A DNA stretch of 64,000 nt, from IMG/VR virus record IMGVR_UViG_3300032268_000832, positions 186,001-250,000 of that record; one strand, 5' to 3'. Positions 3,911-58,428 of the stretch are shown in pieces. The translations under genes and the position numbers were made by a program. The number at the start of each line of letters is the position of its first letter. Position 1 is the first letter of the stretch. The notes under the pieces are model-generated. The model had not been told where the DNA came from. It saw only the letters and a program-made list of their open reading frames with translations, and did no database searches.

Positions 3911-4065
3911 TTGTCATTGAAAGATGTATACCGCAAGCTATCTACAAATATTTATGATTCAGTACTTAGTTAATGTAGGTCTTCCCAGCAACCTCTAAAT
4001 TTATTTTTAATGTTGGGAAACTTCAAACAGGGTTTAGAAGTAAAAGCCCCAACATCTTGAGACAA
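3911..4065 (+). ncRNA. Y-RNA-like element copy 1
   Basis: terminal stem TTGTC..AAGATGT / ACATCTT-G-AGACAA then ATACCGCAA; directly after the DUF2828 gene. Confidence 0.55.
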
Positions 4066-4072
4066 TTAAAAT

Positions 4073-4101
4073 AAAACCTTCCATATATGGAGGGTTTTTT
4101 T
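4073..4101 (+). terminator. intrinsic terminator
   Basis: AAAACCTTCCATATATGGAGGGTTTTTTT. Confidence 0.8.
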
Positions 4102-4150
4102 GTTTTATATTATTTACATATTTTTTATTTTTCGGTATATTTAAAATAAA

Positions 4151-4393
4151 ATGAAAAAACTATTAATTAAAGAGGTAGACCGTTATTATAGTAGTAATAA
4201 AAAAGGTAAATATATTAGTGAATTTTTAATCTATGTTAAAATTGATGACCAAAATTTAAAATGTGAAACTGCTATTGGTGATAATGAAAAAAAAGAAATT
4301 GTTAACGAACTAATTTTAATACATTTTTACGATTACAACACAAAAGAAATCCTTAATTCAATAGAAGAAATAACATTATTTAATAAAAACTAA
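4151..4393 (+). CDS. hypothetical protein
   Basis: ORF track. Confidence 0.5.
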   Translation: MKKLLIKEVDRYYSSNKKGKYISEFLIYVKIDDQNLKCETAIGDNEKKEIVNELILIHFYDYNTKEILNSIEEITLFNKN

Positions 4394-4394
4394 A

Positions 4395-4733
4395 ATGGAA
4401 AACAACCACCCACTTATCCTAGTATTTTACTTGGACGCTGAAATGATGCAAAACCAACAAATTATTCAACCATTTGCCGAATCGGTAAATCATATGATTG
4501 AACAAAAAAATTCTAACATGATGGCATTCTTTTTACCAACTACTGGTGAAGAACGAGTAGAATGTATCAACCCAGTAATGCTTTCAGAACCAGATATGGA
4601 GAAAGTACAACAAATGATTAAAGAGATTCAAGAACAGTTTTCAGTAGGTGTTGATATGGATATTGAAGATATTGAAATTGAAAATAATCCATGCGAATGC
4701 GGTGGAGATTGTAATTGTGGTAAATATGAATAA
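4395..4733 (+). CDS. hypothetical protein with Cys-rich C-terminus
   Basis: ORF track; CECGGDCNCG tail. Confidence 0.6.
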   Translation: MENNHPLILVFYLDAEMMQNQQIIQPFAESVNHMIEQKNSNMMAFFLPTTGEERVECINPVMLSEPDMEKVQQMIKEIQEQFSVGVDMDIEDIEIENNPCECGGDCNCGKYE

Positions 4734-4914
4734 TCAAGATAAAGCAATAATATATGACAATTGTCTTAGAGAAAGTGATTCACTTCAAAGACAAAATTCT
4801 AAATTAAAATCTGAATATGCTGGTAATATACCAAATAATATTCAACAACAAATAGATAGAAATGATAAGAGAATAGCTGAGTTGGTAACAAAATTAGAAA
4901 ACTTATTTAAATAA
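4726..4914 (+). CDS. hypothetical coiled-coil protein
   Basis: ATG at 4726 within track ORF 4648..4914. Confidence 0.55.
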   Translation: MNNQDKAIIYDNCLRESDSLQRQNSKLKSEYAGNIPNNIQQQIDRNDKRIAELVTKLENLFK

Positions 4915-4942
4915 AATTAAACCCAGAAATTTTCTGGGTTTT

Positions 4943-5602
4943 TTAATGTAACGTACTTTGTCTTCGTATTTTAGGGTAAGGCCAACCTGTTTCATCATGT
5001 ATCACATCATATAATCTACCTATATTAGACTTAGTTGCTGTCCCCATAAATAAAAGACTTTTTATTTTTTGTTTTTTAGCTATTTTAGCAAGTGTATGGT
5101 GTAACCTTTGAGCTTCTTCTAAATTCTTACATAAAACCATATCAAATTGGTCCTCATTATATATTAACAATTTGTTATAAACAACTATGATTTGTTTAAC
5201 AGTTTTTTTAGAATGTGCGTTAAGCATAAGTCTTTTAACTATTTCACGTATTGTTGGTCTTTCACCGTTTTTATAACCAATACCATAAATCATAAATGTT
5301 TCTTCAAGCTCATAATCTTGAGATGTTAAAATAGTCCAATCACCCAAGGGTTCTTCAGTGTATAACTTACCATAACCATCTCTAAGGGTTCTAAATGTAT
5401 CACCCTCTTCAGTTGGTTTTGTCACAGCAATCTCGTATTTTACAGGTATAATTTTATTACTATTAACAAAACGTTTAGGAAACAAAACATTATTTTCTTC
5501 TTTTATTTTATGGTAACGTGTAAAAATAGTTTCTAGGGTTCTAGCTCTATGAATTGTCTTTTTATATTCGCCGTTACACAATAATACAACTCTATATGTC
5601 AT
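4943..5602 (-). CDS. hypothetical protein
   Basis: 219-aa ORF; terminator-like hairpin at 4919-4943. Confidence 0.7.
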   Translation of the reverse strand: MTYRVVLLCNGEYKKTIHRARTLETIFTRYHKIKEENNVLFPKRFVNSNKIIPVKYEIAVTKPTEEGDTFRTLRDGYGKLYTEEPLGDWTILTSQDYELEETFMIYGIGYKNGERPTIREIVKRLMLNAHSKKTVKQIIVVYNKLLIYNEDQFDMVLCKNLEEAQRLHHTLAKIAKKQKIKSLLFMGTATKSNIGRLYDVIHDETGWPYPKIRRQSTLH

Positions 5603-5657
5603 CTATTTGCATTTTTAATATAATTTAAGTATATTTGCTAAAAAATAAATACAAACT

Positions 5658-6689
5658 ATGAGCAAAAAAGATTATTATGAAGTTTTAGGTCTTAATAAGG
5701 CTGCTACTGCTGAAGAAATCAAAAAAACCTATAGAAAATTAGCAAAAGAACACCATCCAGATAAGGGCGGTGATGAAACACTATTTAAAGAAATTTCAGA
5801 AGCTTATGAAGTTTTATCTGATAAAGATAAAAAAGCCAAATACGATAGATTTGGTCATTCTCATGATAATATAGGTGGGTATGATGATATGCAAAATGGT
5901 TTCCATGATATGTTCAGTCAATTTTTTAGACAAAAACAAGCTAGAGAACGCGTTGGTGAAAATATGACCTTAACTGTAAAATTAACACTAGAAGAAATTT
6001 TTACAGGTGTTAAAAAGAAATATAACTACAATAGAAATGTTTCTTGTACTGACTGTTCTGGACATGGTGGTTCTGAACCACAAGAATGTTCTACATGTAA
6101 TGGAAGTGGTCAGATTAGACAAGTCACTAGAACACCTTTTGGTTTTATGGAAAACATAAATGATTGTCATGTTTGTAGTGGTACTGGAACAACTTTTAAA
6201 AACGAATGTAAAACTTGTAGTGGTAGTGGTTTAGTAAAAAAACAAGAACTAGTTGAAGTAGACATACCAACTGGAATCCAAGATGGTATGGCATTTGTTA
6301 TGGGTGGTAAAGGCCATGGTGTTAAAAGCGGAAGAGAAGGTGATTTAATTATACGAATATCCGAATTACCACACGAAAAATTCACTAGAGTTGGTTCGGA
6401 ACTAAAATTAAAACTTAAATTAGAATACCATCAGTTGGTATTGGGTGATAAAGTTGAAATAAACACCATAGAAGGTGGTAAAATTAGAATACCAATATCA
6501 GAATACAGTCAAATTGGGCAAAACCTTAAAATACCGTTTAAAGGTCTCAGAGAGCTAAATACAGACAAACGTGGTGATTTAATTGTTACTTTGGATGTGA
6601 ATATACCAAAAACTCTAGATGATAGCTTAAAAGCTATTATAATCGATTTAAAAGAAGAGTACGAAAAAAAACAAACGGAAAGTTTGTAA
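5658..6689 (+). CDS. dnaJ: DnaJ chaperone
   Basis: J domain with HPD, four CxxCxGxG repeats, C-terminal domain. Confidence 0.95.
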   Translation: MSKKDYYEVLGLNKAATAEEIKKTYRKLAKEHHPDKGGDETLFKEISEAYEVLSDKDKKAKYDRFGHSHDNIGGYDDMQNGFHDMFSQFFRQKQARERVGENMTLTVKLTLEEIFTGVKKKYNYNRNVSCTDCSGHGGSEPQECSTCNGSGQIRQVTRTPFGFMENINDCHVCSGTGTTFKNECKTCSGSGLVKKQELVEVDIPTGIQDGMAFVMGGKGHGVKSGREGDLIIRISELPHEKFTRVGSELKLKLKLEYHQLVLGDKVEINTIEGGKIRIPISEYSQIGQNLKIPFKGLRELNTDKRGDLIVTLDVNIPKTLDDSLKAIIIDLKEEYEKKQTESL

Positions 6690-6750
6690 ATTAGAATATT
6701 AATTAGTATTTTTGTAAAACAATAACATTATATAAAATTTTTTAAAAACA

Positions 6751-7176
6751 ATGGCTAGATACGAAGAACCATTTGAAGACACAACAGACTTGTATACTAA
6801 ACACATAGAAAGAGCAGGTCTATCTAATTTCATTAACATTACTGTGTTAACTAACAATAAAGCTAAAGACGTTTACAAGGTAAACAAAGCTAACGAATTG
6901 TTAAAATACAGAACTGGTGATGATATCATCATCGTTATCAACGAAAACGTCTTAGATAAACTTGATGACGCTGATAAAGAAATGGTGATTGAAGAATCTA
7001 TTTCTTCAATCCACTATAACACTGAAAAAGACAGAATTGAGATTTCTAAACCAGACGTTGTTACGTTTAGTGGTATTTTATCTAAACACGGTTTCGATAA
7101 ATGGAATCGAGTTAGAGAAACTATAAGTTTGTTATTCGAATCAGAAAAACAAACAGAGGCAGAAAACGCTGAGTAA
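6751..7176 (+). CDS. hypothetical phage protein
   Basis: ORF track; TAnnTTTG promoter upstream. Confidence 0.65.
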   Translation: MARYEEPFEDTTDLYTKHIERAGLSNFINITVLTNNKAKDVYKVNKANELLKYRTGDDIIIVINENVLDKLDDADKEMVIEESISSIHYNTEKDRIEISKPDVVTFSGILSKHGFDKWNRVRETISLLFESEKQTEAENAE

Positions 7177-7472
7177 TGTTCAAAGAACAGATTGCTGAAA
7201 TAAACCCAGAAGCGTTATTAGTTGATGGGTTTGACGAAGCTATTATAGGCATGGCCGAGAGAATAAATCTCGGCCCTGTTGTTGCCTATGACGTAGAAAA
7301 AATAATCGAAATACTTGCTAAAGACATGGAAGTTGATATTGACGACATTACGGATGGTCAATCAATTGAAGAAGTTCAAATTAGTATGGCTTACGAATAT
7401 TTTTATTTTAATATCCAAGGAGCTTGGATGGGTGACTACACACCAATTTTTATTAGTAAACTACAAAATTAA
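7176..7472 (+). CDS. hypothetical phage protein
   Basis: DGFDEAIIG...AYEYFYFNIQGAWMG resembles a recurrent phage family. Confidence 0.65.
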   Translation: MFKEQIAEINPEALLVDGFDEAIIGMAERINLGPVVAYDVEKIIEILAKDMEVDIDDITDGQSIEEVQISMAYEYFYFNIQGAWMGDYTPIFISKLQN

Positions 7473-7477
7473 ATAAA

Positions 7478-8173: not shown

Positions 8174-8291
8174 TTATAAATAAACTTGCATTTTATAAAA
8201 AATGTTAGTATATTTGTAAAAAGATTTAGGATATGCGGGTTTTTTAATGTGTGCCCGCATATTTATAAATCACAAGTTCTTAGAAAAATAT

Positions 8292-8642
8292 GGGGTTGGT
8301 TGGTTTTGATTGGGTATAGTCGTAAACTGTAAGCATGTAGTGCTAGATTGGAAGCACTTTAATCTGTCTATTAAACATTGAATTGACAACGATTTTATCG
8401 TATCTGAAAATTTCCTTGATGAAGCTGTAATGGTTTCTAACGGAGAGTTAGCAGTAGCTTAAAACTGCAAATAGTGGTAATCCACTTGATAGTGATAATT
8501 CACTAAATAATGGTACACCATTCATCTTTATTATTGGATGCCATCGATAATATATTCTGGCGCTAGAAGAAAAATTGTAGCTAAACATGTAGAAAACATT
8601 TGAAGAATACTCAAGACGCGGGTTCGATTCCCGTCAGCTCCT
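8292..8642 (+). ncRNA. ssrA: tmRNA; tag ORF 8385-8462 DNDFIVSENFLDEAVMVSNGELAVA*
   Basis: GGGGTTG/CAGCTCC acceptor with G3-U70, GACGCGGGTTCGATTCCCGT T arm, tag ending AVA-stop. Confidence 0.9.
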
Positions 8643-8787
8643 CGAGTACTTTTTTGGGTGTATTAGGTTAATTCTTATTATACTCAACTCTTTAAAAAGA
8701 TTCAGTTAATTTTACCGAAAACATACTGAAATAAAAACCCCTAGTAAATTGTCGCTTACTAGGGGTTTAACTTTTTAATGCAATACC

Positions 8788-9115: not shown

Positions 9116-9197
9116 AAAAAGTTGTAAAAAAACTTGACATGAGTCGAAACTTTTAGTATCTTTGCATATATTTATTACAATACGTTCTTAAACAACA

Positions 9198-9408
9198 TAT
9201 CTAAAAAGATGATTTCTGCAAACAGATATCTACAACTATGAGAAGGAGTAACTAGTCTCCATCGGACATTACTGACAACATTGAAATACCATGAGTCGCT
9301 ATTGTCACACGAAAGTGAAAAAAACTGGGAGTGTTGTGAGGACACTTTAAATCTACTACCGTGAGCACGTTAGTCACGTAAAACAAAGCGAACTATCATC
9401 TTGAGATA
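9198..9408 (+). ncRNA. Y-RNA-like element copy 2
   Basis: TATCT-AAA-AAGATGAT / ATCATCTT-G-AGATA stem then TTCTGCAA; promoter directly upstream. Confidence 0.6.
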
Positions 9409-9415: not shown

Positions 9416-9494
9416 TGGTTAAAGAATCTTTTCAGCAAACTAAAACTCTATTTTTAATTTGATAAAAAACACAGAAAAAAAGAGATTCTGACCA
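9416..9494 (+). ncRNA. Y-RNA-like element copy 3
   Basis: TGGT-TAA-AGAATCT / AGATTCT-G-ACCA stem then TTCAGCAA. Confidence 0.6.
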
Positions 9495-9717: not shown

Positions 9718-10377
9718 ATGGCAAGAAAAGAAAAAAACATACACTACATTTATAAAACAACGTGTAATATAACAGGACGATGGTACATCGGAATGCATAG
9801 CACGTATAACTTAGAAGATGGTTATATAGGTAGTGGTAAAACATTAAGACGTTCTATTAGAAAATACGGTAAAGAAAATCACACAAAAGAGATTCTAGAA
9901 TTTTTAGAAAATAGAGAAGAATTAGCTAAAAGAGAAAAAGAAATTGTTAATAAAGAATTAATTTCAGATTCCAAATGTATGAATTTGGCTCTTGGTGGTG
10001 AAGGTGGTGGTTTTATCAATGAAGAACATATGTTTAAATGTGTTAAAGCTGGTAGAAAAAAAACTGACGAAGTTTTAAAAGAAAAGTTCGGTGGTGATGA
10101 AAACTGGTTAAGTAGATTCAATTCTCATGTTAATAAAATAGCTTGGGAAAATGAAGAATACAGACAGAATAAATTAAAAAATCTAGATTGGACTGGTAAA
10201 AATCATGCTGAAGAATCTAAACGTTTAATCTCTGAAAAAAGAAAAGGTACTGGTATTGGTGAAACAAATAGTCAATACGGTACGTGTTGGATAACCAGAG
10301 ACGGTGCTAACAAAAAGATAAAAAAAGAAAACCTTGAAACTTATCTGAACGAAGGTTGGGTTAAGGGTAGAAAATAA
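9718..10377 (+). mobile_element. GIY-YIG homing endonuclease (Seg-like)
   Basis: YIYKTT...WYIGMH...YIGSG, NUMOD3-like GKNHAEESK; sits between two tRNA-Met genes. Confidence 0.85.
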
Positions 10378-10384: not shown

Positions 10385-10472
10385 CGCGGAATGGTGGAAA
10401 TGGTAACATGCTAGGCTCATAACCTAGAGGAGCAGTAACACTGTGTTGTAGGTTCGAATCCTACTTCCGCAA
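10385..10472 (+). tRNA. tRNA-Met(CAT) with C1:A72 mismatch and long variable arm
   Basis: CTAGG-CTCATAA-CCTAG; variable hairpin GCAG-TAACA-CTGT. Confidence 0.8.
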
Positions 10473-10473
10473 C

Positions 10474-10528: not shown

Positions 10529-10597
10529 AAAATTAAAACCCATAGCAATATGGGTTTTTCTATTTAAACTAATAATTAATTTAAAACACAAAAACCA

Positions 10598-11275
10598 ATG
10601 GAAAAGATTAAACTTGAAATTCGTGGTGCAGAGGGCGGGACCGATGCAAAGCTATTGGTGTGTGAAATGAAAGACATTTACACCAAAGCAGCAAACATTA
10701 ATAACATCGGATGAATAACCGATGAAGAAAGAGATGGCTATGTTAGCATATGACTAACTGGTAAAAATGTCAAAAAAATCTTCGAAAACGAAATTGGTAA
10801 CCACAGGTGGCAAAGAGTCCCACCAACCGAACGTAAGGGAAGAGTCCACACTAGTTCAATAACAGTAGCACTTATGCAAGAAAACGATTACAAAGAAGTA
10901 GAGATACATCCAAGTGAATATCGTTTAGAAACAACTAGAGGGACTGGTCCAGGTGGGCAGCACCGCAACACTACTGACTCTACAGTAATTGTAACTCATG
11001 AAGCAACAGGTATTAAAGTTGTAAGAAACGGAAGATGCCAACATAAAAATAAAGAAGAAGCTCTTGTCGAATTAAAAAAACGAGTAAACGATTTTTATAG
11101 AAGCGGTCATGATAATGAAGCTAGTGAACAAAGAAAAGACCAAATCGGGAAGGGTGATAGAGGTGATAAACGAAGAACCTACAGAGTTAAAGATGGTGTT
11201 GTAATCGACCATATCACAGAAAAGACTGCAAATATAAAAGACATATACAGAGGTAAAATACAATTACTATCGTAA
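10598..11275 (+). CDS. class I peptide chain release factor (RF1-like PxT and GGQ; no domain 1) with in-frame TGA at 10712 and 10751
   Basis: manual translation [45 protein letters not shown], in frame with track ORF 10874 ([12 protein letters not shown]). Confidence 0.85.
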
Positions 11276-11559: not shown

Positions 11560-12498
11560 ATGATTTCAACAATTATTATTGTTTTATCGCTAATAATGGC
11601 GATAGTAATCGCTCTTTCCACAAGGGAATCGAGCACAAAACAAACCAACTGGGGAACAGAATTTAATAGTGTTTGGTTAATTAAACCAATACTAATATTA
11701 GTTTTGGGCCTTACGTTAGGTTTTACTCAACCTTACAAATTAGATAGGGTCGATGCTGGTAACGTAGGTATCAAAGTCAACTTATCTGGTGATGCACGCG
11801 GTGTATCAAAGTATGAATACAAAACTGGTTGGGTAGTATTCAATACATGGACTGAACAACTTTATCAGTTTCCAGTTTTCCAACAAACTATTGGATATGA
11901 AAAACAACAAGTTATAACCAAAGGTGGTTTCCCAGCGACAATTCACCCAAGTTTTAACTATTCATTAAAAGCTGGTGCTGTTGGTGATATGTTCCAGAAT
12001 TTACGTTTGGATATTAAATCAGTAGAACAAGGTTGGTTACAAACAGCCATAGTTGGTGCTATTAATGACGTTGCTAATAAATGGGAGGTTGATAAAATCT
12101 TTAACGAGCGTGAACAATTTGAAGCTGCGATTAAAACTGAATGTAACAAGCGTTTATCTAAATGGTTTACCGTGTCACAATTAAGAACAAACATTGTTCC
12201 ACCACAATCCTTACAAGAAACAATTATAGCTAAAACTAGAGCGATTCAACAAGCACAAGCTGAGGACCAAAAAGCTCTTACAGCTGAAGCTGAAGCTAGA
12301 AAGAAAGTGGCTATTGCTAATGGTGATGCACAACAAACAATTATCGCGGCTAAAGCACAAGCAGAAGCTATGAGAATTAGAAAACAAGAAATCACTCCGT
12401 TGTATGTTGAATACTTAAAATGGATTGACATCAACCCTAACACACCAAGGGTACCACAAGTTGTGGGTAGCACAGCAGTGTTAAACCAACTTAAATAA
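11560..12498 (+). CDS. SPFH/band 7 (prohibitin-like) membrane protein
   Basis: N-terminal TM, VDAGNVGIKV, Ala/Glu/Gln-rich coiled coil. Confidence 0.85.
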   Translation: MISTIIIVLSLIMAIVIALSTRESSTKQTNWGTEFNSVWLIKPILILVLGLTLGFTQPYKLDRVDAGNVGIKVNLSGDARGVSKYEYKTGWVVFNTWTEQLYQFPVFQQTIGYEKQQVITKGGFPATIHPSFNYSLKAGAVGDMFQNLRLDIKSVEQGWLQTAIVGAINDVANKWEVDKIFNEREQFEAAIKTECNKRLSKWFTVSQLRTNIVPPQSLQETIIAKTRAIQQAQAEDQKALTAEAEARKKVAIANGDAQQTIIAAKAQAEAMRIRKQEITPLYVEYLKWIDINPNTPRVPQVVGSTAVLNQLK

Positions 12499-17637: not shown

Positions 17638-17674
17638 TTTTTGTTTTTTAAAAATAAAATTGTATCTTTGCAAA

Positions 17675-18847
17675 ATGAAAACACAGATAAAACAAATACT
17701 TAGAGAAGGACTTACAATGGAAGAAAGAATTAAATTTGACTTCCAAATACCATCAGATATAATTGAAATCCAAAAGGTGTTCACCAAAAACGGATATAAA
17801 TTATATGTGGTTGGTGGAGCTGTGCGCGATGCCCTATTAGGAAAAACACCTAAGGATTTTGATTTAGCTACAGATGCTGTTCCTGACAAAGTAGAAGAAA
17901 TGATGCAAGATGCTGGGTTCAGAACCCTACCAACTGGTAAAGCTTTTGGTGTTATCAACGTATTCACTGACCAAGGAGAATATGAAGTAGCTACGTTTCG
18001 AAATGATATTGGTTCTGGTAGAAGACCAGACAGTGTTGAATTTACAAATATAGATGGTGATGTAAAAAGACGTGACCTTACAATCAACGCTTTGTTCTAT
18101 GATATAGACACAAAAGAAATAGTTGACCTTGTAGGTGGTGTAGACGACCTTAAAAACGGTGTTGTGAGAACTGTTGGTGCCCCAGAAGATAGATTTGGTG
18201 AAGATAGGCTTAGAATTCTAAGAGCGATTAGATTTGCTGGTAGATTTGGTTCTGATTTAGACCCAGCAACAGATATGGCATTACAAAAAGATGCAAGTCT
18301 TGAAGGTATTTCTGGTGAGCGTATTAGAGATGAGTTTATCAAAGGATTAATCTCAGCTAAGTCATTTAAAAAATACATGGAAATGTTAGATAAATATGAC
18401 TTATTCAAATGGGTGTTACCTAACATGTTATTGAATAAAAAATCATACATGAGAAACTCTGGTAAAGTTGACAATTACATTGTTGAATTGGCTAGTTTAT
18501 TAAAAGATAACGAAATTGATTTGTTAAGAAGAAAATTAAATGAATTGAAATACTCAGCAGACGAAATAAAAGCGATTGTGTTTTTAATTTCATTCTTAAA
18601 ATTGAGTGTTGATACCGCATACTTGTTGAAAAAAATGCAACAAACTGCTGGTGTTTCTGATAAACAAATTAGAGAATTTGGTGAGAAAGAAAACATACCA
18701 GAAAAATTGTTAAACGCTTTTGAACAATATAGACTTAGCGTTAGCGGACCAGAGGCTATGGAAAAATTTGATTTGAAACCAAGTCCTGAGTTGGGAAAAG
18801 CCATCCAAAAAATGGAAACAGCTAACTTTGAAAAATTATTAAAATAA
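17675..18847 (+). CDS. cca: CCA-adding tRNA nucleotidyltransferase
   Basis: VGGAVRD, DFDLAT, RRDLTINA, EDRLRILRAIRF, ERIRDE. Confidence 0.92.
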   Translation: MKTQIKQILREGLTMEERIKFDFQIPSDIIEIQKVFTKNGYKLYVVGGAVRDALLGKTPKDFDLATDAVPDKVEEMMQDAGFRTLPTGKAFGVINVFTDQGEYEVATFRNDIGSGRRPDSVEFTNIDGDVKRRDLTINALFYDIDTKEIVDLVGGVDDLKNGVVRTVGAPEDRFGEDRLRILRAIRFAGRFGSDLDPATDMALQKDASLEGISGERIRDEFIKGLISAKSFKKYMEMLDKYDLFKWVLPNMLLNKKSYMRNSGKVDNYIVELASLLKDNEIDLLRRKLNELKYSADEIKAIVFLISFLKLSVDTAYLLKKMQQTAGVSDKQIREFGEKENIPEKLLNAFEQYRLSVSGPEAMEKFDLKPSPELGKAIQKMETANFEKLLK

Positions 18848-24105: not shown

Positions 24106-24189
24106 TGTGATGTGGATGAATGGTTTAGTCACCAGCCTGATACGCTGGGTGTTTATAACACAATGTGGGTTCGAGTCCCACCGTCACAA
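24106..24189 (+). tRNA. tRNA-Ile(GAT) with long variable arm
   Basis: CCAGC-CTGATAC-GCTGG; variable hairpin GTGTT-TAT-AACAC. Confidence 0.8.
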
Positions 24190-24191
24190 CT

Positions 24192-24604: not shown

Positions 24605-24690
24605 TCTGGTTTGGCCGAGTGGACGATGGCAGCAGACTGTTAATCTGCTAGGGTACACCCTCAACGTAGGTTCGAATCCTACAGCCAGAG
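24605..24690 (+). tRNA. tRNA-Asn(GTT) with long variable arm
   Basis: GCAGA-CTGTTAA-TCTGC; variable hairpin AGGGT-AC-ACCCT. Confidence 0.8.
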
Positions 24691-24757
24691 CGAAAATTTT
24701 TTTGTTAATCTATTGACTTTTTGTTCGAATTTATTATATTTATAATAAAAACAAATT

Positions 24758-27761: not shown

Positions 27762-28700
27762 ATGAAAAAAGAAATAAGAACAATATTAAGAGAAGGTATG
27801 TTAAAGAATTCATTAGGGGTTGCGGTTTCAAGACCAGACCAAGTGCTTATCGTGATGCGTGGTATACCAGGCTCGGGTAAATCAACAAAAGCCAAAGAAC
27901 TAGTAGGTGAAGGAGTAATCCATTCAACTGATGCTGTTATAGAGTCACAAGGTGATTACAACAAATTCTTTCAATTAATGTTTGAATCTAAAGACTTTAC
28001 ACCATTGTCAAGAGCTCACTCTACCAATTTAAAAAACGTTGTTGGTTCGTTAAAAGAAGGTGTTTCACCAGTTATCCTAGATAACACAAACATCAAACAA
28101 AACGAATCAAAGGCCGCTATTAAGGCTGCTTTGGAAATGGGGTTGGCTGACAACAACATAAAGTTTGTGGATATAGGTACAGCTGGTCTTACAGCTGAGC
28201 AATTAGCTGAAAGAAACACTCATGGTGTACCGCTTGAAAAAATACAATCAATGATTGAATCACACAAGGGTCAAGGTCCATTAACGCTTAAAAGCGTTTT
28301 AGAATCGAAAGACATGTACAAAGAATCAAACATTTTGTATTCTGCTGTTGTATTGGATGGTGGGTCTAGAGCAGCTTTGTTGTCAAGAATTGAGGGTATG
28401 ATACCTGATGGTTGGAAAGTAATTGCGCACCACATGACTATAGTGTTTGGTAAACCAGTACCAAACCAAGAAGATTTAGGTAAAGAAGTTACTTTGTATG
28501 TTGAAGCTATAGGGATTAGCGATATGGCTATGGCTGTTAGGGTTGAAGGTTATCCATCAACCAATGCGATTCCACATATAACAATTGCGATAAACCCAGA
28601 TGGTGGAAAACCAGTGATGTCGAATGATATCACCAAATGGCAAAAAATAAAGAACTTTGCCATTAAGGGTAGAGTTACTGAAATTAAGAAAGGGTCGTAA
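27762..28700 (+). CDS. polynucleotide kinase-like P-loop fused to 2H phosphoesterase (RNA end healing)
   Basis: GIPGSGKST, ILDNTN, RNTHGVP; HMT and HIT 2H motifs. Confidence 0.85.
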   Translation: MKKEIRTILREGMLKNSLGVAVSRPDQVLIVMRGIPGSGKSTKAKELVGEGVIHSTDAVIESQGDYNKFFQLMFESKDFTPLSRAHSTNLKNVVGSLKEGVSPVILDNTNIKQNESKAAIKAALEMGLADNNIKFVDIGTAGLTAEQLAERNTHGVPLEKIQSMIESHKGQGPLTLKSVLESKDMYKESNILYSAVVLDGGSRAALLSRIEGMIPDGWKVIAHHMTIVFGKPVPNQEDLGKEVTLYVEAIGISDMAMAVRVEGYPSTNAIPHITIAINPDGGKPVMSNDITKWQKIKNFAIKGRVTEIKKGS

Positions 28701-29887: not shown

Positions 29888-31012
29888 ATGTTAAAAATAC
29901 AAAAATTTATAAAAGAAAACGGTTTTGAAAAAGCTGTTAAAGAGTTTCAATTAAAAACTCGTGAATACGAACACAAAGTGTTATTGAAATATGACCAATT
30001 AGTGTCACCAACTATTATGTCGAACATAGAAGTTCAAGAATGTAGAGGTCTTATCCTTGAAAAAGGTACATGGGATGTTATGTCGTTGGCTTTCACAAAA
30101 TTCTTCAATGCTGAAGAAGGAAACGCTGCTAAAATAGATTGGAACACAGCTCACGTTTTAGAGAAACTTGACGGTACTCTTATACAAGTGTATTGGGACT
30201 GGGTAAACGAAGAATGGTATGCTGGTACTACTGGTACAGCTGAGGGTGAGGGTGAAGTTAACAACAAAATGGGAACTACTTTTAACTCATTGTTTTGGGA
30301 CACTGTAACAAAACAATATGCGTTGAATACATGTATGTTCGACAAAAACCATGTATATGTGTTTGAGTTAACAACTCCATATAATATTGTTGTAAAACCA
30401 CACGGAGAATCATCAGCAACTTTGTTGACTGTTAGAAACCGTGTTACATTACAAGAGGTTTCTTGGAAAAACTTAACTATGATTGCAGAATCGTTAAGAG
30501 TACCATTGGTTAAAAGATTTGACTTGAATGCTAAAGATGTGGGTACTTTGTTACGTACATTTGAAGGTATGCCATGGTCAGAAGAAGGTTACGTTGTTGT
30601 AGACGCTAATTTTAACCGTATCAAGATAAAAAACCCAGCTTACGTTGCGGTTCACCACTTGAAAGGTAAAACAGCTGAACACAACATCATAACTATCGTT
30701 AAATCTAACGAGATAGAAGAATTCGCTTCAACTTTCCCAGAAAGAAAAGATGAATTGCTTAGACTTAAAGATAACTACGATAAATTAACTGACAAGTTAA
30801 ATGATGTTTGGGTTGAGTTAAGTGCTCGTAAACCAAAAAACATAACCAAAGAAGAAAAGAAAAGATACGCTGCGGCTGTATTTGAAGTTTGTGGTAAACA
30901 CGACTTAAAACAATTCACTGGATTGTATTTCGGATTGGTTGATGGTAAAGTTGGTTCCGTAGAAGACTTCATTGTAAACTACGATGACAAATTATTATAC
31001 AAAATGCTCTAA
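29888..31012 (+). CDS. RNA ligase, T4 Rnl1-like
   Basis: ECRGLIL, KFFN, EKLDGTLI, FEL, EGYVV, KIK. Confidence 0.85.
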   Translation: MLKIQKFIKENGFEKAVKEFQLKTREYEHKVLLKYDQLVSPTIMSNIEVQECRGLILEKGTWDVMSLAFTKFFNAEEGNAAKIDWNTAHVLEKLDGTLIQVYWDWVNEEWYAGTTGTAEGEGEVNNKMGTTFNSLFWDTVTKQYALNTCMFDKNHVYVFELTTPYNIVVKPHGESSATLLTVRNRVTLQEVSWKNLTMIAESLRVPLVKRFDLNAKDVGTLLRTFEGMPWSEEGYVVVDANFNRIKIKNPAYVAVHHLKGKTAEHNIITIVKSNEIEEFASTFPERKDELLRLKDNYDKLTDKLNDVWVELSARKPKNITKEEKKRYAAAVFEVCGKHDLKQFTGLYFGLVDGKVGSVEDFIVNYDDKLLYKML

Positions 31013-49168: not shown

Positions 49169-50392
49169 ATGAGCAAACAACTAACACACGAGTTTCTAGT
49201 AGAAAATGGGTTAATACTTTTTGAAACCATAATTGGTTCTCAAGCATATGGTACCCAAACACCTACTAGTGATGTAGACAAAAAATTCGTATACATATTA
49301 CCTATGGATTATATCTTGGGTACTGGATATGTTGAACAAATAAATGTAAATAAAGACTACACAGGTTGGGAACTTAGACGTTTCCTAGAATTAATGGAAA
49401 CAAACAACCCAACGGTTCTAGAACTTTTAAACAGCCCAGGAGACTGTATAATCAGCAAACACCCTTTGTTTGACCTAATCCTTGCACATAAGGAGGATTT
49501 CATAACAAAACTATGTAAAAATAGCTTTGGTGGATACGCTAGACAACAAATTGTTAAAGCTAAAGGTCTTAACAAGAAACAAAACTGGGAAAAAGACAAA
49601 GTAACTAGAAAAGACTTGTTAGATTTCTGTTATGTTATTCAAGGTGATAAATCAATCCCATGGAGAGCGTGGAATGCTAACAAATATGATGAAAAATTTG
49701 TTGGTGCTGTGAATATCCCAAATGCGAGAGATACCTACGCTTTATTTTATGACAGCGTTGCTGAAATGCTTCATTCTGAAAATACTGATGAAGAACTTAG
49801 AGAGACTTATAAAGAAGCACTGAGAAAAGCTGGTAAATCAATGGGTATGGGTTATAAAGGACTTATCAATACTGGTCATGAAGATGAAGATGGTAAGATT
49901 AACTACGGTATCTCAAATCAATTACGTCTTTCTAGCGTACCTAAAGGTGAGAAAGTTATTGCAACAATAGTGTATAACAAAGATGGTTATTCAGAACATT
50001 GTAAAGACTATAAAGAGTATCAAGAATGGCTTGAAAACCGTAACGAAGCTCGTTATGTTGAAACACAAGAACATGGGCAAAGAATTGATGGTAAGAATAT
50101 GATGCACTGTATGCGTCTTATCAGAATGGCAACAGAAATTGGTCAAGGTAAAGGGATTCAAGTAAGAAGAGAAGATAGAGAATATCTATTATCAATTCGT
50201 AGAGGTGAACTAGACTTAGATAAATTAATCGAAGAAGCGGATAATGCAATTAAAAATATGGATGAAGTTTTTGATAATTCCACTCTACCTGACAGAGTCC
50301 CTAAGGGTTTGGTAAATGCTCTTTTAGTTACTATCAGAAGAGAATTTTATGATTTGCCAATATCGGCAACAACACTTGAAAAAAGACTTTAA
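49169..50392 (+). CDS. Pol beta-like nucleotidyltransferase (YcgL/RlaP-like)
   Basis: GSQAYGTQTPTSDVD, NPTVLE, KNMMHCMRL. Confidence 0.8.
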   Translation: MSKQLTHEFLVENGLILFETIIGSQAYGTQTPTSDVDKKFVYILPMDYILGTGYVEQINVNKDYTGWELRRFLELMETNNPTVLELLNSPGDCIISKHPLFDLILAHKEDFITKLCKNSFGGYARQQIVKAKGLNKKQNWEKDKVTRKDLLDFCYVIQGDKSIPWRAWNANKYDEKFVGAVNIPNARDTYALFYDSVAEMLHSENTDEELRETYKEALRKAGKSMGMGYKGLINTGHEDEDGKINYGISNQLRLSSVPKGEKVIATIVYNKDGYSEHCKDYKEYQEWLENRNEARYVETQEHGQRIDGKNMMHCMRLIRMATEIGQGKGIQVRREDREYLLSIRRGELDLDKLIEEADNAIKNMDEVFDNSTLPDRVPKGLVNALLVTIRREFYDLPISATTLEKRL

Positions 50393-52634: not shown

Positions 52635-52723
52635 GGGACTATGGTGTAGTTGGTTAAACATCCCATCCTTACAAGATGGAGACGAGAAGTATAACGCTGG
52701 TTCGAATCCAGCTAGTCCTACCA
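52635..52723 (+). tRNA. tRNA-Val(TAC) with 16-nt variable region
   Basis: CCATC-CTTACAA-GATGG; encoded CCA. Confidence 0.8.
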
Positions 52724-53940: not shown

Positions 53941-53977
53941 CAATCTGGTTAAGATTCCAGTAATCAAAAATCTAAAT

Positions 53978-54050: not shown

Positions 54051-54059
54051 CAATAAAAA

Positions 54060-54131: not shown

Positions 54132-54215
54132 CTGGTAACATCTGGTAATTTTAATACCAGTAAAAACCATTAAAAACAGGGATTATTAGTTTTATCTGGT
54201 AATGTCTGGTAATTT

Positions 54216-54287
54216 GGGGTCATAGCTCAACGGCTGAGCGCTTCCCTTGCACGGAAGAGGATGTGGGTTCGAATCCCATTGGCTCCA
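54216..54287 (+). tRNA. tRNA-Ala(TGC)
   Basis: CTTCC-CTTGCAC-GGAAG; G3-U70. Confidence 0.9.
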
Positions 54288-54340
54288 CTAATTAGTTTCT
54301 ATCTTTTTAATTTTTAAAGATATTTATAGATAAAAAAAGT

Positions 54341-56683
54341 ATGAAATTATCACATATATTCAAGGATTTGTTAAATGAGGATTTTAAAACTCAAACACAG
54401 AAATTCATCTCTCAAGGTTATGAACCAGAAATTGTTAGGTCGTATATTGAAAAATTTAAATATATTAGAGATGGTAAGTATCGTGAGGCGCTTAACCCTG
54501 ACTTAAACATCAACGTTCCAGTTGAAAAACGATTTGATATTGATGCGTACCCAACGTTTAATTCTCTTGAAACCCTAGTTGATTATGTGTCAGGTCAAAG
54601 ACCAGTTAAAACCACTATGTCAAAACAAAATGATATTGAAGTTACTGGTGAAGCTGTTTATAACAAAGATGGTGTTGAAGTATTTTATGCTGACAATCCA
54701 AGAGCGTGTATTAAATATAAGGGTAGTATGCCATATAGTTGGTGTGTTGCTAGGTCAGATTCTTCAAACATGTTCTATACATACAGATTTAAACCATATG
54801 AACCAGCTTTTTATTTTGTTAAGGATGTAAAAGCTACTGAAAAAGAATTGGCAGATATTGCTAAAACTGGTACTGTTAGTGGTGGTTTTAAAAATAGATA
54901 TCATTTCTTTGTTATTCAAGTACCTAAAAACCTTAACCCTGAAGATGACAACACCCCACAATACATAGTTACTTCAGCTAACAATGACGGGGATAATCAA
55001 TTAAGTTGGAATCAAATTCTAGAAATAAACCCAAAATTAGCTGCTATAAAAAATGTATTGATTCCTAAACCTTTTACACCACAAGAAAGGGCGCAACATG
55101 AAAGGTTTAAAAAGGGTATAAATGATAATGAATTTAGGAAACTTAGTTACGAAGATAAGAAAGCTTATTTGGATATATACCCAACAATTGCTAAACCAAT
55201 TACAACTAATCAATTTTTGATATTACCAGACGATTTAAAGAATCTATATGTTTCATTTGGTATTGGATTAGACGATGAACAATTTGATAGTATTAAAAAC
55301 AACCCTAAATTACTTAAGCGTTATGTACAAATTAGTGATAGAAAGTTAGATGTTTATTTAAAAGCTGATAATTGGAATAGAACTAGTTATCGTATGATGT
55401 ATACTGAATTGATAGTACTTCCAGAGGAAAAAATATCAGAATACTTAAACACTTTAAATAAAAAAGAAATTGGTAGTTTTATTGCGAATAACGGTGTTGA
55501 TAAATTAGAAATGCTAGAGAAACTTGCTTCTGGTAAATTGGTTGGTAATTATTCTGATATTAAACCGATAATTGATGGTTTAAGAAAAAATAGTGGAATT
55601 AGATATAGAAGCAAATATAATGAAGAAACAGATGTAATAGAACTGTTAAACGAAATGCTTCCAGATAGTGTATCTGTTGAATATGGTGAATATTCAAATG
55701 AAATTATGTTTGAACTTTCTTCCGAAATAAAATTTGGTTATGATTTAGAAGGTGTTTTATCCAGCTTATCACAAGATAGTTGGGATTCATGGAATGATAG
55801 TTATTTTGATGGTTGGTCTGAAGGACTTAAAGAAGAATACGAAAACCAAATAGAATCAGTACTTAAAGACCAAAATTTAGTTAATGATTTAAGAAAAAAT
55901 GGTATAAACCCAACACCAAAAATAGTAGAAACGTTATTAGAAAAATTTAATGCGAGTGAAAAAATAAAAGAACACATTGATGAAGTTTATACTGAAGCTC
56001 AATCTGTTAGTGAAAATCGAATATTTAGAGAGTTACATAATAAATTTACAAAGATAATAACTTACGAGAATAGTAATAGCGGTGGTTATTATGGTTCTAG
56101 TAGAAGAAATTTTACTGAGGTTACTATAAATATATCTAATTTTATTGGTGCTTTAATTTCAGATTCTGACATATTAACAAAAGATAAAACACAATTTGAA
56201 AGCGCTTTTGAATCATTATTAGAAGACTTATTAGAACAAGCCGATTTACCTACAACTCAAGAAGAGATAGACGAAGAAGTTAGAAATGGTGGTGTAGATA
56301 TTGATAATGAAGCTATGAGTAACTACATAAAGGAAAAAATATATGAGATTATAGATGAAAAAATTTATAATAATGACGATGAATATAATGACGAAGAACG
56401 TGAAGAAATAAAAAAAACAAAATATGATATTCTTACAGCTTTTGAAAAAACACTTAAAGGGTTAGGTCAAGATGAAAATACTAATGAAATAGAAAATGAT
56501 TTAGTTCGTATTGTATTTGATAGAAGTAAAATTAAAACCAATGGGTCGATTTATACCTCTGTTATTCATAAGAAAGATAATAGTACTTTTAATGGTTATA
56601 TGTTTATTAATGACATCCCATCTTATTTTAAAAACTACAAATTATTTGAAGAAATAAAAAAAATGAAAAATTTAATCAATTAA
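54341..56683 (+). CDS. large hypothetical protein (FKDLLNE N-terminal motif)
   Basis: 780-aa ORF; YSWCV segment resembles SLWCF of the 15709 gene. Confidence 0.75.
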   Translation: MKLSHIFKDLLNEDFKTQTQKFISQGYEPEIVRSYIEKFKYIRDGKYREALNPDLNINVPVEKRFDIDAYPTFNSLETLVDYVSGQRPVKTTMSKQNDIEVTGEAVYNKDGVEVFYADNPRACIKYKGSMPYSWCVARSDSSNMFYTYRFKPYEPAFYFVKDVKATEKELADIAKTGTVSGGFKNRYHFFVIQVPKNLNPEDDNTPQYIVTSANNDGDNQLSWNQILEINPKLAAIKNVLIPKPFTPQERAQHERFKKGINDNEFRKLSYEDKKAYLDIYPTIAKPITTNQFLILPDDLKNLYVSFGIGLDDEQFDSIKNNPKLLKRYVQISDRKLDVYLKADNWNRTSYRMMYTELIVLPEEKISEYLNTLNKKEIGSFIANNGVDKLEMLEKLASGKLVGNYSDIKPIIDGLRKNSGIRYRSKYNEETDVIELLNEMLPDSVSVEYGEYSNEIMFELSSEIKFGYDLEGVLSSLSQDSWDSWNDSYFDGWSEGLKEEYENQIESVLKDQNLVNDLRKNGINPTPKIVETLLEKFNASEKIKEHIDEVYTEAQSVSENRIFRELHNKFTKIITYENSNSGGYYGSSRRNFTEVTINISNFIGALISDSDILTKDKTQFESAFESLLEDLLEQADLPTTQEEIDEEVRNGGVDIDNEAMSNYIKEKIYEIIDEKIYNNDDEYNDEEREEIKKTKYDILTAFEKTLKGLGQDENTNEIENDLVRIVFDRSKIKTNGSIYTSVIHKKDNSTFNGYMFINDIPSYFKNYKLFEEIKKMKNLIN

Positions 56684-56752
56684 ATTTGCAAGATTAAAAA
56701 TTTACTCGTATATTTGCATCATAATTAATATAAAACTTAAAATAAAAACAAG

Positions 56753-57091
56753 ATGAGTAAATTTGAAAAAATGATTTCGGCTAGTAATTCAACAACATTA
56801 GCAAACAGAGCTAGCGATTTAGCTGAAGAAGTGTCTTTAGAGTTAAACTCTTTCATCAACAATTTGAAAAGAGAAAAATCTCAGTTGAAAAGTAAAATCA
56901 ACAAGTTAACGGATTTAGCACCAGAGAACACTACATCTTTGAGACCTGGTCATCCAGAATTCAATGCTTCGAATTGGGTAGCTGAGTTACATCAATGTCG
57001 TATGGATTTAGCATTGAAAGATGTTGAATTAGCAGAAGCACAAGCTATCCACGATGAATACTTTGGTGAAGAAGCTGAAAACGCTAAGTAA
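56753..57091 (+). CDS. hypothetical coiled-coil protein
   Basis: ORF track. Confidence 0.65.
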   Translation: MSKFEKMISASNSTTLANRASDLAEEVSLELNSFINNLKREKSQLKSKINKLTDLAPENTTSLRPGHPEFNASNWVAELHQCRMDLALKDVELAEAQAIHDEYFGEEAENAK

Positions 57092-57093
57092 TC

Positions 57094-57579
57094 ATGAGTA
57101 CAAAACCGAAAGTGTATTTGGCGAAATCAAACAGAGCTAATCCAGAATTGGTTAGTAGAGTTCGCCAAACTCTTTCCAAATATGATATAGAAATCGTTGA
57201 ATTTAAGGGTGGTCAATTTAGTCACAAACCAATGTTAGAATGTGAACAATTAGTAGTTGTACCAGACTTATCAGATGAAGAAAATATCGTAATTGGGAAA
57301 GGGTTGTATGAGCAAATTGAAAGATTTGGTTCCTCAAAAGGTTTTGAATATGTTTTAACTATCACTAGTGATAACATGTTGATTAAAGAACTTGATGATA
57401 TTGATATAATTGATTATGATGATTACGTTGAATACGCTCTTCTACATTTTCAATCATCATGGGGTTCTGAACACTTGAAGGACGTTTTAGATGAAATTGG
57501 TTATAACCCAAAATCATCAAATACTTTAAAAACGTCTGGTAAATCAAATTATTATATGTTAATTGGTAAAAAAGTTTAA
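57094..57579 (+). CDS. hypothetical protein, possible TIR or deoxyribosyltransferase-like fold
   Basis: KPKVYLAKS..VRQTLSKYDIEIV N-terminus; weak. Confidence 0.45.
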   Translation: MSTKPKVYLAKSNRANPELVSRVRQTLSKYDIEIVEFKGGQFSHKPMLECEQLVVVPDLSDEENIVIGKGLYEQIERFGSSKGFEYVLTITSDNMLIKELDDIDIIDYDDYVEYALLHFQSSWGSEHLKDVLDEIGYNPKSSNTLKTSGKSNYYMLIGKKV

Positions 57580-57768
57580 AAAAAACTTGCAAGATTGAAA
57601 AACACTTAGTATATTTGCATTGTAATTTTAAATAAACATCGTAGAGTGTTTGAGAGTAGTAGCTATTAGGAAAGTTCCTCCTCTTTATCGAAAGATAAAT
57701 GAAACTTTGTACTGGCGGTGGTATCAAACACAAAGACGTAAGTATTGGGGTCTTACAACCCCAAGAAT

Positions 57769-57841
57769 GGTACCGTAGCTCAGTTGGTAGAGCAATGGAC
57801 TGAAAATCCATGTGTCACTGGTTCGATTCCAGTCGGTACCA
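57769..57841 (+). tRNA. tRNA-Phe(GAA)
   Basis: ATGGA-CTGAAAA-TCCAT. Confidence 0.92.
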
Positions 57842-58014
57842 CTACAGTAAGACGGTTAGCCTTACGTAAAGAACTTTAAGACACCATGGAAGGTTTTAAA
57901 GGGAAATGACGCTAACAGCTGAGGAAGTGCTAGAACTTCTGGGTTTGCAGTTCGGACCCTCTCCCAAAGAAAACACTGCAATGGTACTATCATGGGAACG
58001 ATAGTACCAAAACA

Positions 58015-58090
58015 CGGGGATAGCATAAGGGCGGCAGTTCCTTGCAGAACGTATACTAGTTGCCGAGGGGTTCGACTCCCTTCTCCCCGA
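58015..58090 (+). ncRNA. degenerate tRNA-like RNA
   Basis: CGGGGA/TCCCCG acceptor and GAGGG-GTTCGACT-CCCTT T arm; non-canonical middle. Confidence 0.5.
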
Positions 58091-58104
58091 CTAAATTATT
58101 AACT

Positions 58105-58278
58105 ATGGCTACATTAGCACAAAAATCTAGACAAGCTAGAGCGTTAGCAATGCTTGAAACACAACTTAAAAGTGGTGTTAAAACTCAGAAAGGAACTTCT
58201 GACGTTAAAATCGAATTGACAGATGCGGATAGAAAACGTATCAACAAAGAGATTAGTAACTTAAAAGCGAAAGCTTAA
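58105..58278 (+). CDS. small basic protein
   Basis: ATG at 58105, MATLAQKSRQAR... Confidence 0.6.
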   Translation: MATLAQKSRQARALAMLETQLKSGVKTQKGTSDVKIELTDADRKRINKEISNLKAKA

Positions 58279-58282
58279 AAAA

Positions 58283-58428
58283 TAGGTAAAGAAAGATTAT
58301 TTCAGCAATTTAAATCAACAGCCTCCTAAGCTCGTGGTCGCAGGTTCGAATCCTGTCTAGTTTTTCCTAGGAAAAGCAAGTAGCTCAGTTGGATAGAGCA
58401 CGTATGAAAAAATTAATCTTGTTACCTA
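58283..58428 (+). ncRNA. Y-RNA-like element copy 6 containing a circularly permuted tRNA-Arg(CCT)
   Basis: TAGGTAA-AGA-AAGATTA / TAATCTT-G-TTACCTA, TTCAGCAA; internal order is anticodon arm, T arm, closed acceptor, D arm. Confidence 0.75.

Follow-up and report, generated by a model that had tools for sequence, protein, structure and literature searches.

A stretch of viral DNA of 64,000 nucleotides raises the question of whether six short elements dispersed along it, each closed by a stem, belong to one family of small noncoding RNAs (ncRNAs), and whether these RNAs are partners of a Ro60-like protein whose gene precedes the first of them. The stretch, referred to here as the window, spans bases 186001–250000 of the 306-kb IMG/VR virus record IMGVR_UViG_3300032268_000832 and has a G+C content of 32%. 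A preliminary description of the window had proposed such a family and its association with a protein of the DUF2828 family. Our analysis indicates that the elements are probably small ncRNAs of one modular family whose common handle is bound by a Ro60-fold protein, the two forming a phage particle of the Ro–Y RNA type. The gene and the elements are as follows; each element is given from the first base of its 5' arm to the unpaired G that follows its 3' arm, and R2 is one of two covariance models (R1 and R2) used in the analysis.

2418–3872, + strand: DUF2828 gene, encoding a protein of 484 amino acids with a predicted Ro60 fold, a helical TROVE-like ring plus a vWA domain with a MIDAS motif (metal ion-dependent adhesion site) (Pfam and structural model)
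3921–4059, + strand: copy 1, AAGATGT ... ACATCTT-G, motif CCGCAA, cargo of about 115 nt with three hairpins
9206–9403, + strand: copy 2, AAGATGAT ... ATCATCTT-G, motif CTGCAA, multi-hairpin cargo of about 175 nt
9423–9490, + strand: copy 3, AGAATCT ... AGATTCT-G, motif TTCAGCAA, short A/U-rich cargo; R2 49.5 bits
10478–10526, + strand: copy 4, AGAATAG ... CTATTCT-G, motif TTCAGCAA, minimal element of 49 nt; R2 45.9 bits
52995–53083, + strand: copy 5, AAGATAG ... CTATCTT-G, motif TTCAGCAA, between tRNA-Val and tRNA-Leu; R2 56 bits
58293–58421, + strand: copy 6, AAGATTA ... TAATCTT-G, motif TTCAGCAA, circularly permuted tRNA-like cargo

All six elements are on the + strand, and their total lengths range from 49 to 198 nt. 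The closing module has the same order throughout: a 7-bp terminal helix, a 3-nt spacer (N-U-N), the motif C-N-GCAA (mostly CAGCAA), variable cargo, the 3' arm, and the unpaired G. The 5' arms are 7–8 nt long and follow the pattern AAGATNN or AGAATNN, with the variable positions changing in a compensatory manner between copies, such that the 3' arm is the exact reverse complement of the 5' arm in each copy. The closing helix, in which the two ends of the RNA (5' and 3') are paired, is present in the unconstrained minimum-free-energy fold of all six copies. Scanning the whole genome with a model also revealed a seventh copy 1.9 kb past the end of the window, between two tRNAs (G000:C1:251927-251989). 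This copy reads AGGGTGG-TTT-CAGCAA ... CCATCCT-G and scores 46 bits with R2.

The preliminary description had recognized all six elements and their end-closing stem, although the starts that it gave lie 3–10 nt too far 5'. The features that it attributed to the elements hold: stem pairs that co-vary, seen as compensatory arm changes between copies and as covariation of all seven helix pairs in the alignment described below; a 3' unpaired G, which follows the 3' arm in every copy; a motif common to the copies, defined here as C-N-GCAA and located 3 nt after the 5' arm; and unrelated cargo of about 25–175 nt, with which the total lengths agree. It had also correctly placed copy 1 after the DUF2828 gene (the copy begins 49 nt past the stop of the open reading frame, ORF) and had noticed tRNA parts in copies 5 and 6. 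The parts found here are a T arm in copy 5 and, in copy 6, a T arm followed by a capped acceptor-like hairpin and then a D arm.

A first pattern scan of viral contigs returned mostly chance 17-mer matches, with full elements in only about 21 of 115 loci. As the set obtained with the RNA pattern was biased toward the window's own clade, the family was re-derived from the protein side, using 88 DUF2828 loci (80 viral contigs with relatives at 44–100% identity, three assemblies, and five cultured phages). Within these loci, 92 of 338 forward CAGCAA hexamers have an exact 7-nt reverse-complement arm, taken at offset 3 and followed by G, within 300 nt. Controls at four other offsets and on the reverse strand gave 0–3 such cases, the test being anchored on the hexamer alone. 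The closing module is not a product of chance. When the motif is relaxed to C-N-GCAA and one G-U pair is allowed, 137 forward elements are found compared with 9 reverse elements, and 67 of the 88 loci contain one. In an alignment produced with a covariance model of the window's clade, double (compensatory) changes are present at 7 of 7 helix pairs, and 99% of the alignment cells are paired, compared with 28–49% when the partners are slid.

The consensus of 89 distinct elements is A-G-R-W-U-N-N / N-U-W / CAGCAA / G-poor ... A-rich / 3' arm / G-U-U. Among these elements G is found at arm position 2 in 98% and U at spacer position 2 in 91%. The arms in other loci are quite different from one another and include AGGATNN, AGAATNN, AGGTTNN, GGGATNN, AGACCNN and TGGACNN.

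The elements are concentrated around the DUF2828 gene. Forward TTCAGCA occurs 11, 15, 12 and 7 times in the successive 250-nt bins from -250 to +750 of the gene, compared with 0–5 times (mostly 0–2) in bins elsewhere, and the reverse strand around the gene, with 0–6 occurrences per bin, shows no matching enrichment. Of the 137 forward elements, most (110) are no more than 800 nt away from the gene. With a covariance model whose training set was the window's clade alone, 40 matches were obtained, all of them on the gene's strand. The linkage extends from phages of Bacteroidetes-like hosts to those of Escherichia (Bas63), Cronobacter (S13), Vibrio (KVP40), Listeria and Mycobacterium. Contigs found via the RNA pattern lead back to the protein, which is encoded by both of the near-complete contigs among them and by three fragments. 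In a sample of 32 semi-random viral contigs of at least 40 kb, three of the four with the gene have model matches at E ≤ 0.01, and the fourth carries the gene at the very end of the contig. Matches were found in 2 of the 28 contigs without the gene, both weak and in contigs that are 35–53% complete, and three jumbo contigs (342–461 kb) without the gene gave no model match. The association of gene and element in the 32 contigs corresponds to a Fisher p of about 0.008, computed by hand. Co-occurrence with DUF2828 genes, which the proposed family entailed, is thus found on the same strand, mostly within 800 nt, and in very distant phages.

The protein itself has the predicted architecture of Ro60. 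ORF 2418–3872 matches DUF2828 and DUF7788, and only these, in Pfam at E ≤ 0.01, and it falls in PHROG 850 ('RNA-binding protein'); PADLOC and NCBIfam have no model for the DUF2828 protein. An AlphaFold2 model built from 59 diverse homologues has a pLDDT (predicted local distance difference test) of 91. The six best Foldseek matches of this predicted structure in the PDB are all full-length Ro60/TROVE proteins, with E values from 1e-10 to 6e-7. VIA-align places it on the Xenopus Ro autoantigen (1yvr) with a Z of 21.5 over 413 residues (model residues 6–464), and the next unrelated matches, near Z 10, cover the vWA domain only. A comparison of the sequence profile with the PDB likewise ranks Ro60/TROVE at the top, at a weak E of 0.04 and in the MIDAS region. 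The MIDAS residues (DxSxS...T...D; D279, S281, S283, T351 and D383) are invariant in the 59 homologues and align to the MIDAS region of Ro60. The Ro-like nature ascribed to the protein in the preliminary description is therefore supported by a predicted fold that superposes on Ro60 along its full length.

Homologues are found in 702 GenBank phage records and form more than 6,600 clusters at 50% identity. The phages that carry them infect Vibrio, Cronobacter, Escherichia/Salmonella (Felixounavirus), Campylobacter, Listeria, Staphylococcus, Enterococcus, Bacillus and Mycobacterium, and phage records already name some homologues 'Ro-like RNA binding protein' or 'RNA-binding protein'. A Ro-like protein of the DUF2828 family is cytotoxic when overexpressed in mycobacteria (PMC13148394).

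Copies 1 to 4 belong to two apparent transcription units, for which the following signals were identified.

3879–3903, + strand: hairpin and T-run directly after the DUF2828 ORF (read from the sequence; the stem covaries in relatives)
4073–4098, + strand: intrinsic terminator closing the unit of DUF2828 and copy 1 (terminator scan; kept in relatives)
9134–9168, + strand: promoter-like site upstream of copies 2 and 3 (TTGACA, 17 nt, TATCTT; overlapping TAtcTTTG)
10535–10558, + strand: intrinsic terminator after copy 4 (terminator scan)

The hairpin at 3879–3903 has the stem TGAGG/CCTCA, compared with TTAGG/CCTAA in the relative L119. It is absent from the terminator scan because its loop is 10 nt long, and it is probably a leaky terminator or a processing site before copy 1. 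Model R1 matches copy 1 over exactly 3921–4059, at 17 bits and an E of about 1. Copy 1 is syntenic after the DUF2828 gene in three relatives (L118, L119 and L121; protein identity 74–85%), in which the arms show compensatory changes, an internal hairpin covaries, and a terminator follows. The orthologue in L121 has canonical TTTCAGCAA.

The second unit has the order promoter, copy 2, copy 3, tRNA, GIY-YIG-like ORF, tRNA, copy 4, terminator. The copy 2 orthologues in G006, G039 and G003 are preceded by a conserved version of the promoter block, and the last of these orthologues combines the arms AAGATAG/CTATCTT-G and a canonical CAGCAA with different cargo. Both covariance models miss copies with long cargo, and copy 2 was never found by either because its insert is long; a script combining the motif and the arms was therefore used for such copies. 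Copy 4 begins 5 nt past a tRNA, and the spacers between elements and adjoining tRNAs are generally only 3–5 nt. However, the module is no generic spacer between tRNAs, since an array of 12 tRNAs at 23.2–26.2 kb of the window is free of elements. The ORF within this unit (9718–10377, + strand, 219 amino acids) has weak similarity to GIY-YIG (SegE-like) proteins, lies between two tRNA-Met-like genes, and may encode a homing endonuclease. A permissive Rfam match of copy 3 to the Dictyostelium Class I RNA (28.5 bits, E 0.037) is weak, at chance level, and was rejected.

The cargo of copy 5 contains a T-arm mimic (GCGG-TTCAAAT-CCGC). An orthologue of this copy is present in L076, and similar cargo is found in L024, L051 and L098. 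Copy 6 carries a more complete set of tRNA parts, beginning with an anticodon-like hairpin that has the loop CUCCUAA and continuing in order with a variable loop, a T arm, a capped acceptor-like hairpin and a D arm. This order is kept in orthologues from six large viral contigs (L004, L021, L040, L058, L062 and L085); the acceptor hairpins of these orthologues measure about 7 to about 13 bp, and their anticodon-like loops differ. A tRNA-like domain is not typical of the family, as copies 1–4 and most other members have none and a T-loop motif occurs in 11 of the 89 distinct elements.

The YrlA RNAs of bacteria, which are bound by Ro60/Rsr, have a T arm followed by an acceptor stem-loop and then a D arm (Chen et al. 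2014, PMC4201824). The likeness to YrlA suggested in the preliminary description stands for the domain order of copy 6 but not for membership in the family. Copy 6 matches the whole Rfam YrlA model (RF02553) with a score of 36 bits (E 1e-6 to 3e-5), which falls short of the gathering score of 69, and the match comes from the tRNA-like part only. Relatives of the copy in L004 and L197 score 46 and 31 bits, both below threshold, and copies 1–5 gave no match to RF02553 in Rfam scans. At gathering thresholds Rfam matched only tRNAs and the transfer-messenger RNA (tmRNA) in the window. Because of the sub-threshold scores and a different motif, the RNAs are not members of Rfam YrlA. The two kinds of RNA nevertheless resemble each other: their genes, often present in several copies, neighbour that for a Ro60-fold protein and share its strand; pairing of the 5' end with the 3' end closes each RNA, and a short single-stranded motif is conserved close to the 5' end; and copy 6 and its relatives also have the T arm, capped acceptor-like hairpin and D arm in the YrlA order. 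They differ in that the putative phage partner, a DUF2828/DUF7788 protein, is not matched by Pfam TROVE, that the phage motif N-U-N-CAGCAA stands beside a plain 7-bp helix with a 3' G whereas YrlA has GNCGAAN0-1G in a bulged helix, and that most phage members have no tRNA-like domain at all.

Whole-genome scans of five cultured phages (KVP40, S13, Bas63, Wilder and Listeria phage AG20) gave matches on the gene's strand only, and those in Bas63, Wilder and AG20 are no farther than about 1.2 kb from the gene. In Bas63 the true tRNAs just downstream of gp130 are separated by spacers that hold three or four elements, and three unannotated candidate RNAs can be delimited.

L204 about 4754–4821: Bas63 candidate RNA
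L204 about 4921–4979: Bas63 candidate RNA
L204 about 5376–5444: Bas63 candidate RNA

The gp130 protein is a homologue of the window protein with 40.5% identity. Its Ro60-like structure has been noted and it counters the ppl defence system, as reported in the PhageMaP preprint, whose authors guessed that the 'tRNA genes' beside gp130 might be Y RNAs (10.1101/2024.10.10.617714). The preprint identified no RNA, and the candidates described here are not tRNAs but spacer elements between bona fide tRNAs.

In mycobacteriophage Wilder (KX580962.1) the gene for the 'Ro-like RNA binding protein' is followed directly by three copies in tandem. The middle copy (L205 3531-3648) is a permuted tRNA-like RNA between two short members, and the annotated 'tRNA-Asn' (locus 3534-3604) is its anticodon-like hairpin; ARAGORN calls no tRNA there. 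In Listeria phage AG20 (NC_020871.1) three copies stand in tandem between a promoter and the start codon of DUF2828. As separate observations on this phage, the DUF2828 gene and its elements have a ROOL-like large RNA (L206 470-1021; 90 bits, slightly below the gathering score of 99) about 1 kb upstream of them, and a gene for an RtcB-type 'tRNA splicing ligase' lies 1.2 kb downstream.

Cronobacter phage S13 (NC_028773.1) has canonical copies and, in addition, two tRNA-like RNAs that are annotated as tRNA-Ser and tRNA-OTHER.

L123 4395–4517: S13 tRNA-like RNA, annotated at 121 nt
L123 4525–4639: S13 tRNA-like RNA, annotated at 113 nt (both within NC_028773.1 132703–132945)

These two RNAs lie 500–700 nt after the gene and have tRNA bodies in normal order with an encoded CCA. 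In place of the anticodon loop they carry the module capped by a hexaloop (GCAAAC-loop-GUUUGU-AUU-CAGCA). The capped form in S13 has one architecture with the open form of the window, the two being related by circular permutation; this suggests that function resides in the unit of helix plus CAGCAA and not in the RNA ends.

Because the conserved handle is common to the elements and their genes adjoin that of the protein, the RNAs are most likely partners of the Ro60-shaped protein. The constant handle would consist of ends that pair in a 7-bp helix of free sequence, followed on the 5' side by N-U-N and the single-stranded C-N-GCAA; on the 3' side an A-rich stretch would precede the arm and one unpaired G, often followed by UU, would come after it. 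The ring of the DUF2828/DUF7788 protein (2418–3872) would hold this handle, which is most likely the binding site. Exchangeable cargo would be carried at the other end, ranging from almost nothing through unrelated hairpins or a lone T arm to a complete tRNA-like body with a capped acceptor end, and would recruit or mimic a partner, which might for instance be an enzyme of tRNA handling or RNA repair, an exonuclease, or a host tRNA-directed nuclease. The RNAs may derive from transcripts of the DUF2828 unit or of tRNA arrays, and would probably be freed by the nucleases that process the neighbouring tRNAs. We infer that the elements are transcribed as discrete RNAs, bound physically by the protein and given a downstream function in this way. 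That function would probably lie in RNA surveillance or repair, or in counter-defence, in view of gp130, which counters ppl, of the phiLo Ro60–Yrl complex, which recruits host PNPase, and of the RNA-repair genes in the window. The earlier proposal that the DUF2828 protein is a Ro-like scaffold for a modular RNA family gains support from the predicted Ro60 fold and from the co-occurrence of module and gene, with discrete transcripts and binding as its putative components.

Public RNA reads, which matched only conserved tRNA segments of other organisms, are uninformative on the transcription of the elements. Several observations weigh against the particle interpretation. Known Ro partners have a GNCGAA/CGAA motif whereas the phage handle has CAGCAA. 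By sequence, ORF 2418–3872 has no match to Pfam TROVE (PF05731). No element was found within 4 kb of the gene in 21 of the 88 loci, and the matches in KVP40 lie about 6–7 kb from the gene and those in S13 mostly 8–10 kb, with one at about 0.75 kb. In addition, the DUF2828 gene usually adjoins tRNA arrays, and part of the linkage could therefore be indirect.

Among the rival explanations, we consider it unlikely that the module is a structured cis element of the tRNA or DUF2828 transcripts, whether a processing signal, a stabiliser or an autoregulatory operator, and perhaps bound by the protein. The spacers of 3–5 nt to the tRNAs, the leader-like position of the three AG20 copies and the location of copy 1 between an ORF and a terminator would fit such a role. 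However, copies lie up to 54 kb from the gene, the cargo is at times large and conserved, including complete tRNA-like bodies, and the 12-tRNA array does without the module. Moreover, location in a leader or trailer is no argument against stable RNAs, as bacterial Y RNAs are also transcribed together with rsr (PMC4201824). It is also quite improbable that the elements are an independent ncRNA family of tRNA clusters in which the DUF2828 gene merely happens to reside. The gene does adjoin tRNA genes in the window, Bas63, S13, Wilder and AG20, but the elements peak within 250–500 nt of the gene ends and on the gene's strand, those of AG20 and G026 lie directly upstream of the gene with no tRNA between, and the three jumbo contigs without the gene, whose tRNA content was not checked, lack a match.

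Permuted tRNA genes, in which the 3' half of the tRNA precedes the 5' half in one transcript, occur in Cyanidioschyzon merolae and some archaea and mature through cleavage at a bulge-helix-bulge, circularisation, and opening by RNase P and RNase Z into working tRNAs. The tRNA-bearing members (copy 6 and perhaps copy 5) could be such genes, cut, circularised by a phage ligase and opened at the acceptor end. Copy 6 has every part of a tRNA in permuted order as well as a 7-nt anticodon-like loop with U33 and A37, and the phage has genes for Rnl1, for an end-healing enzyme and for a CCA-adding enzyme. We nevertheless judge this very unlikely. Most family members have no tRNA parts and the handle is what remains constant; the acceptor hairpins of the orthologues, of about 7–13 bp, have tight loops and no conserved discriminator or CCA; the anticodon-like loop differs between orthologues (CCU, GUU, UUU, or irregular loops); and no bulge-helix-bulge motif was seen by eye at the junction. 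Unlike permuted tRNA genes, the window RNAs join a variable capped acceptor hairpin to a constant handle of the protein-binding type that is common to members without tRNA parts. Least credible of all are miniature mobile elements (MITE-like) with terminal inverted repeats, a reading suggested by the inverted termini around unrelated cargo and the several copies per genome. The arms covary instead of being conserved, the orientation is always that of the DUF2828 gene (all 40 model matches), the asymmetric internal motif and the 3' G are conserved, and the copies are syntenic in relatives with differing arms, with no transposase seen nearby. Two further candidates were rejected. For a retron msr/msd, a reading prompted by the inverted ends with a conserved G, no reverse transcriptase is found among the Pfam-scanned window ORFs (a subset) or the listed genes of related loci, and the G is at the 3' end, not after the 5' arm. 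A group I or permuted intron was set aside, the flanks being only about 20 nt.

Within the preferred interpretation of a Ro-type particle, a more specific role can be proposed, tentatively and with some doubt. The DUF2828 protein and its RNAs could constitute a programmable counter-defence particle, in which one handle presents interchangeable baits that act as decoys for or capture host tRNA-directed nucleases, or that bring repair enzymes to damaged tRNAs. Candidate baits would be the tRNA-like body with its canonical-looking anticodon loop (GUU, CCU, UUU), the lone T arm, and other hairpins. Candidates for delivery to damaged tRNAs would be Rnl1, the end-healing enzyme, the CCA-adding enzyme and RlaP. 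If correct, this role would explain the neutralisation of a defence system by gp130 and the association of the gene with tRNA arrays in phages of four bacterial phyla.

Among the closest characterised systems is that of the Thermus phage phiLo, whose Ro60 binds two neighbouring Y-like RNAs (Yrl1 and Yrl2) in a complex that recruits host PNPase (PMC12135203; PDB 9KOP, 9L5Y). Here too a Ro60-fold protein is encoded by a phage; Foldseek ranks the phiLo structures first among its matches to the window protein; and the two phiLo RNAs, located just upstream, have a stem formed by the 5' and 3' ends with a conserved motif in the adjacent unpaired region. However, the phiLo protein is recognisable as TROVE and its RNAs contain CGAA, and the binding and PNPase recruitment demonstrated for phiLo have as their counterpart here a binding that we infer. 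Ro-type particles would then use at least two unrelated RNA handles.

That the protein is Ro-like is already known from annotations and one preprint. The RNA family was not found in Rfam 15, nor in the searchable literature, whose coverage leaves out most subscription journals; it is widespread and apparently undescribed. Large phages very commonly encode the DUF2828 'Ro-like' protein, for which no RNA partner has been defined so far. The simple, searchable RNA signature reported here marks candidate partners in cultured phages (Bas63, S13, KVP40, Listeria phages of the A511 type, and LeBron/Wilder), and with candidates in such model phages the role of phage Ro particles becomes directly testable. 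The signature also corrects annotations, as the 'tRNA-Asn' of Wilder and the 'tRNA-Ser' and 'tRNA-OTHER' of S13 are parts of family RNAs.

The window contains 28 tRNA genes and one tmRNA (8292–8645), genes for ClpP, DnaJ and RNase HII (Pfam), and the following genes related to RNA repair.

17660–18847, + strand: CCA-adding/poly(A) polymerase family nucleotidyltransferase
27762–28700, + strand: kinase (AAA_33) plus tRNA-ligase CPD-like phosphodiesterase, of the end-healing type
29888–31012, + strand: T4 Rnl1-type RNA ligase
49169–50392, + strand: RlaP, a DNA polymerase beta family nucleotidyltransferase of an RNA-repair pathway

Together with the tmRNA, ClpP and DnaJ, this set of RNA-repair genes marks the region as one for RNA and protein quality control. 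A release-factor-like ORF with an RF-1 domain and GGQ (10598–11275, + strand) contains two in-frame TGA codons ('NNIG*ITDEE' and 'YVSI*LTG'), and the anticodons UCA and CUA are found among the phage tRNAs (13106–13179 and 53866–53941). These observations suggest stop-codon recoding, with TGA read as an amino acid, in at least some genes, or a broken gene.

Several tRNA genes are unusual. Those for Met, Ile, Asn and Val at 10385–10473, 24106–24190, 24605–24691 and 52635–52723 are 85–89 nt long with apparent long variable arms, which is uncommon for these identities. The tRNA directly after copy 6 (58432–58508) has an oversized anticodon loop, to which ARAGORN assigns the 4-base anticodon 'ttcg', and the tRNA that comes after the orthologous elements in L004 is odd in a similar way. 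A gene of the Band-7/SPFH family is located near the DUF2828 gene both in the window (11560–12498) and in Wilder (L205 128-1087), and may be a conserved neighbour of it. Finally, a Polynucleobacter-1 RNA (Rfam RF01718; 83 bits, above threshold) is found in the viral contig L193 (7294–7438), 2 kb downstream of a DUF2828 gene.

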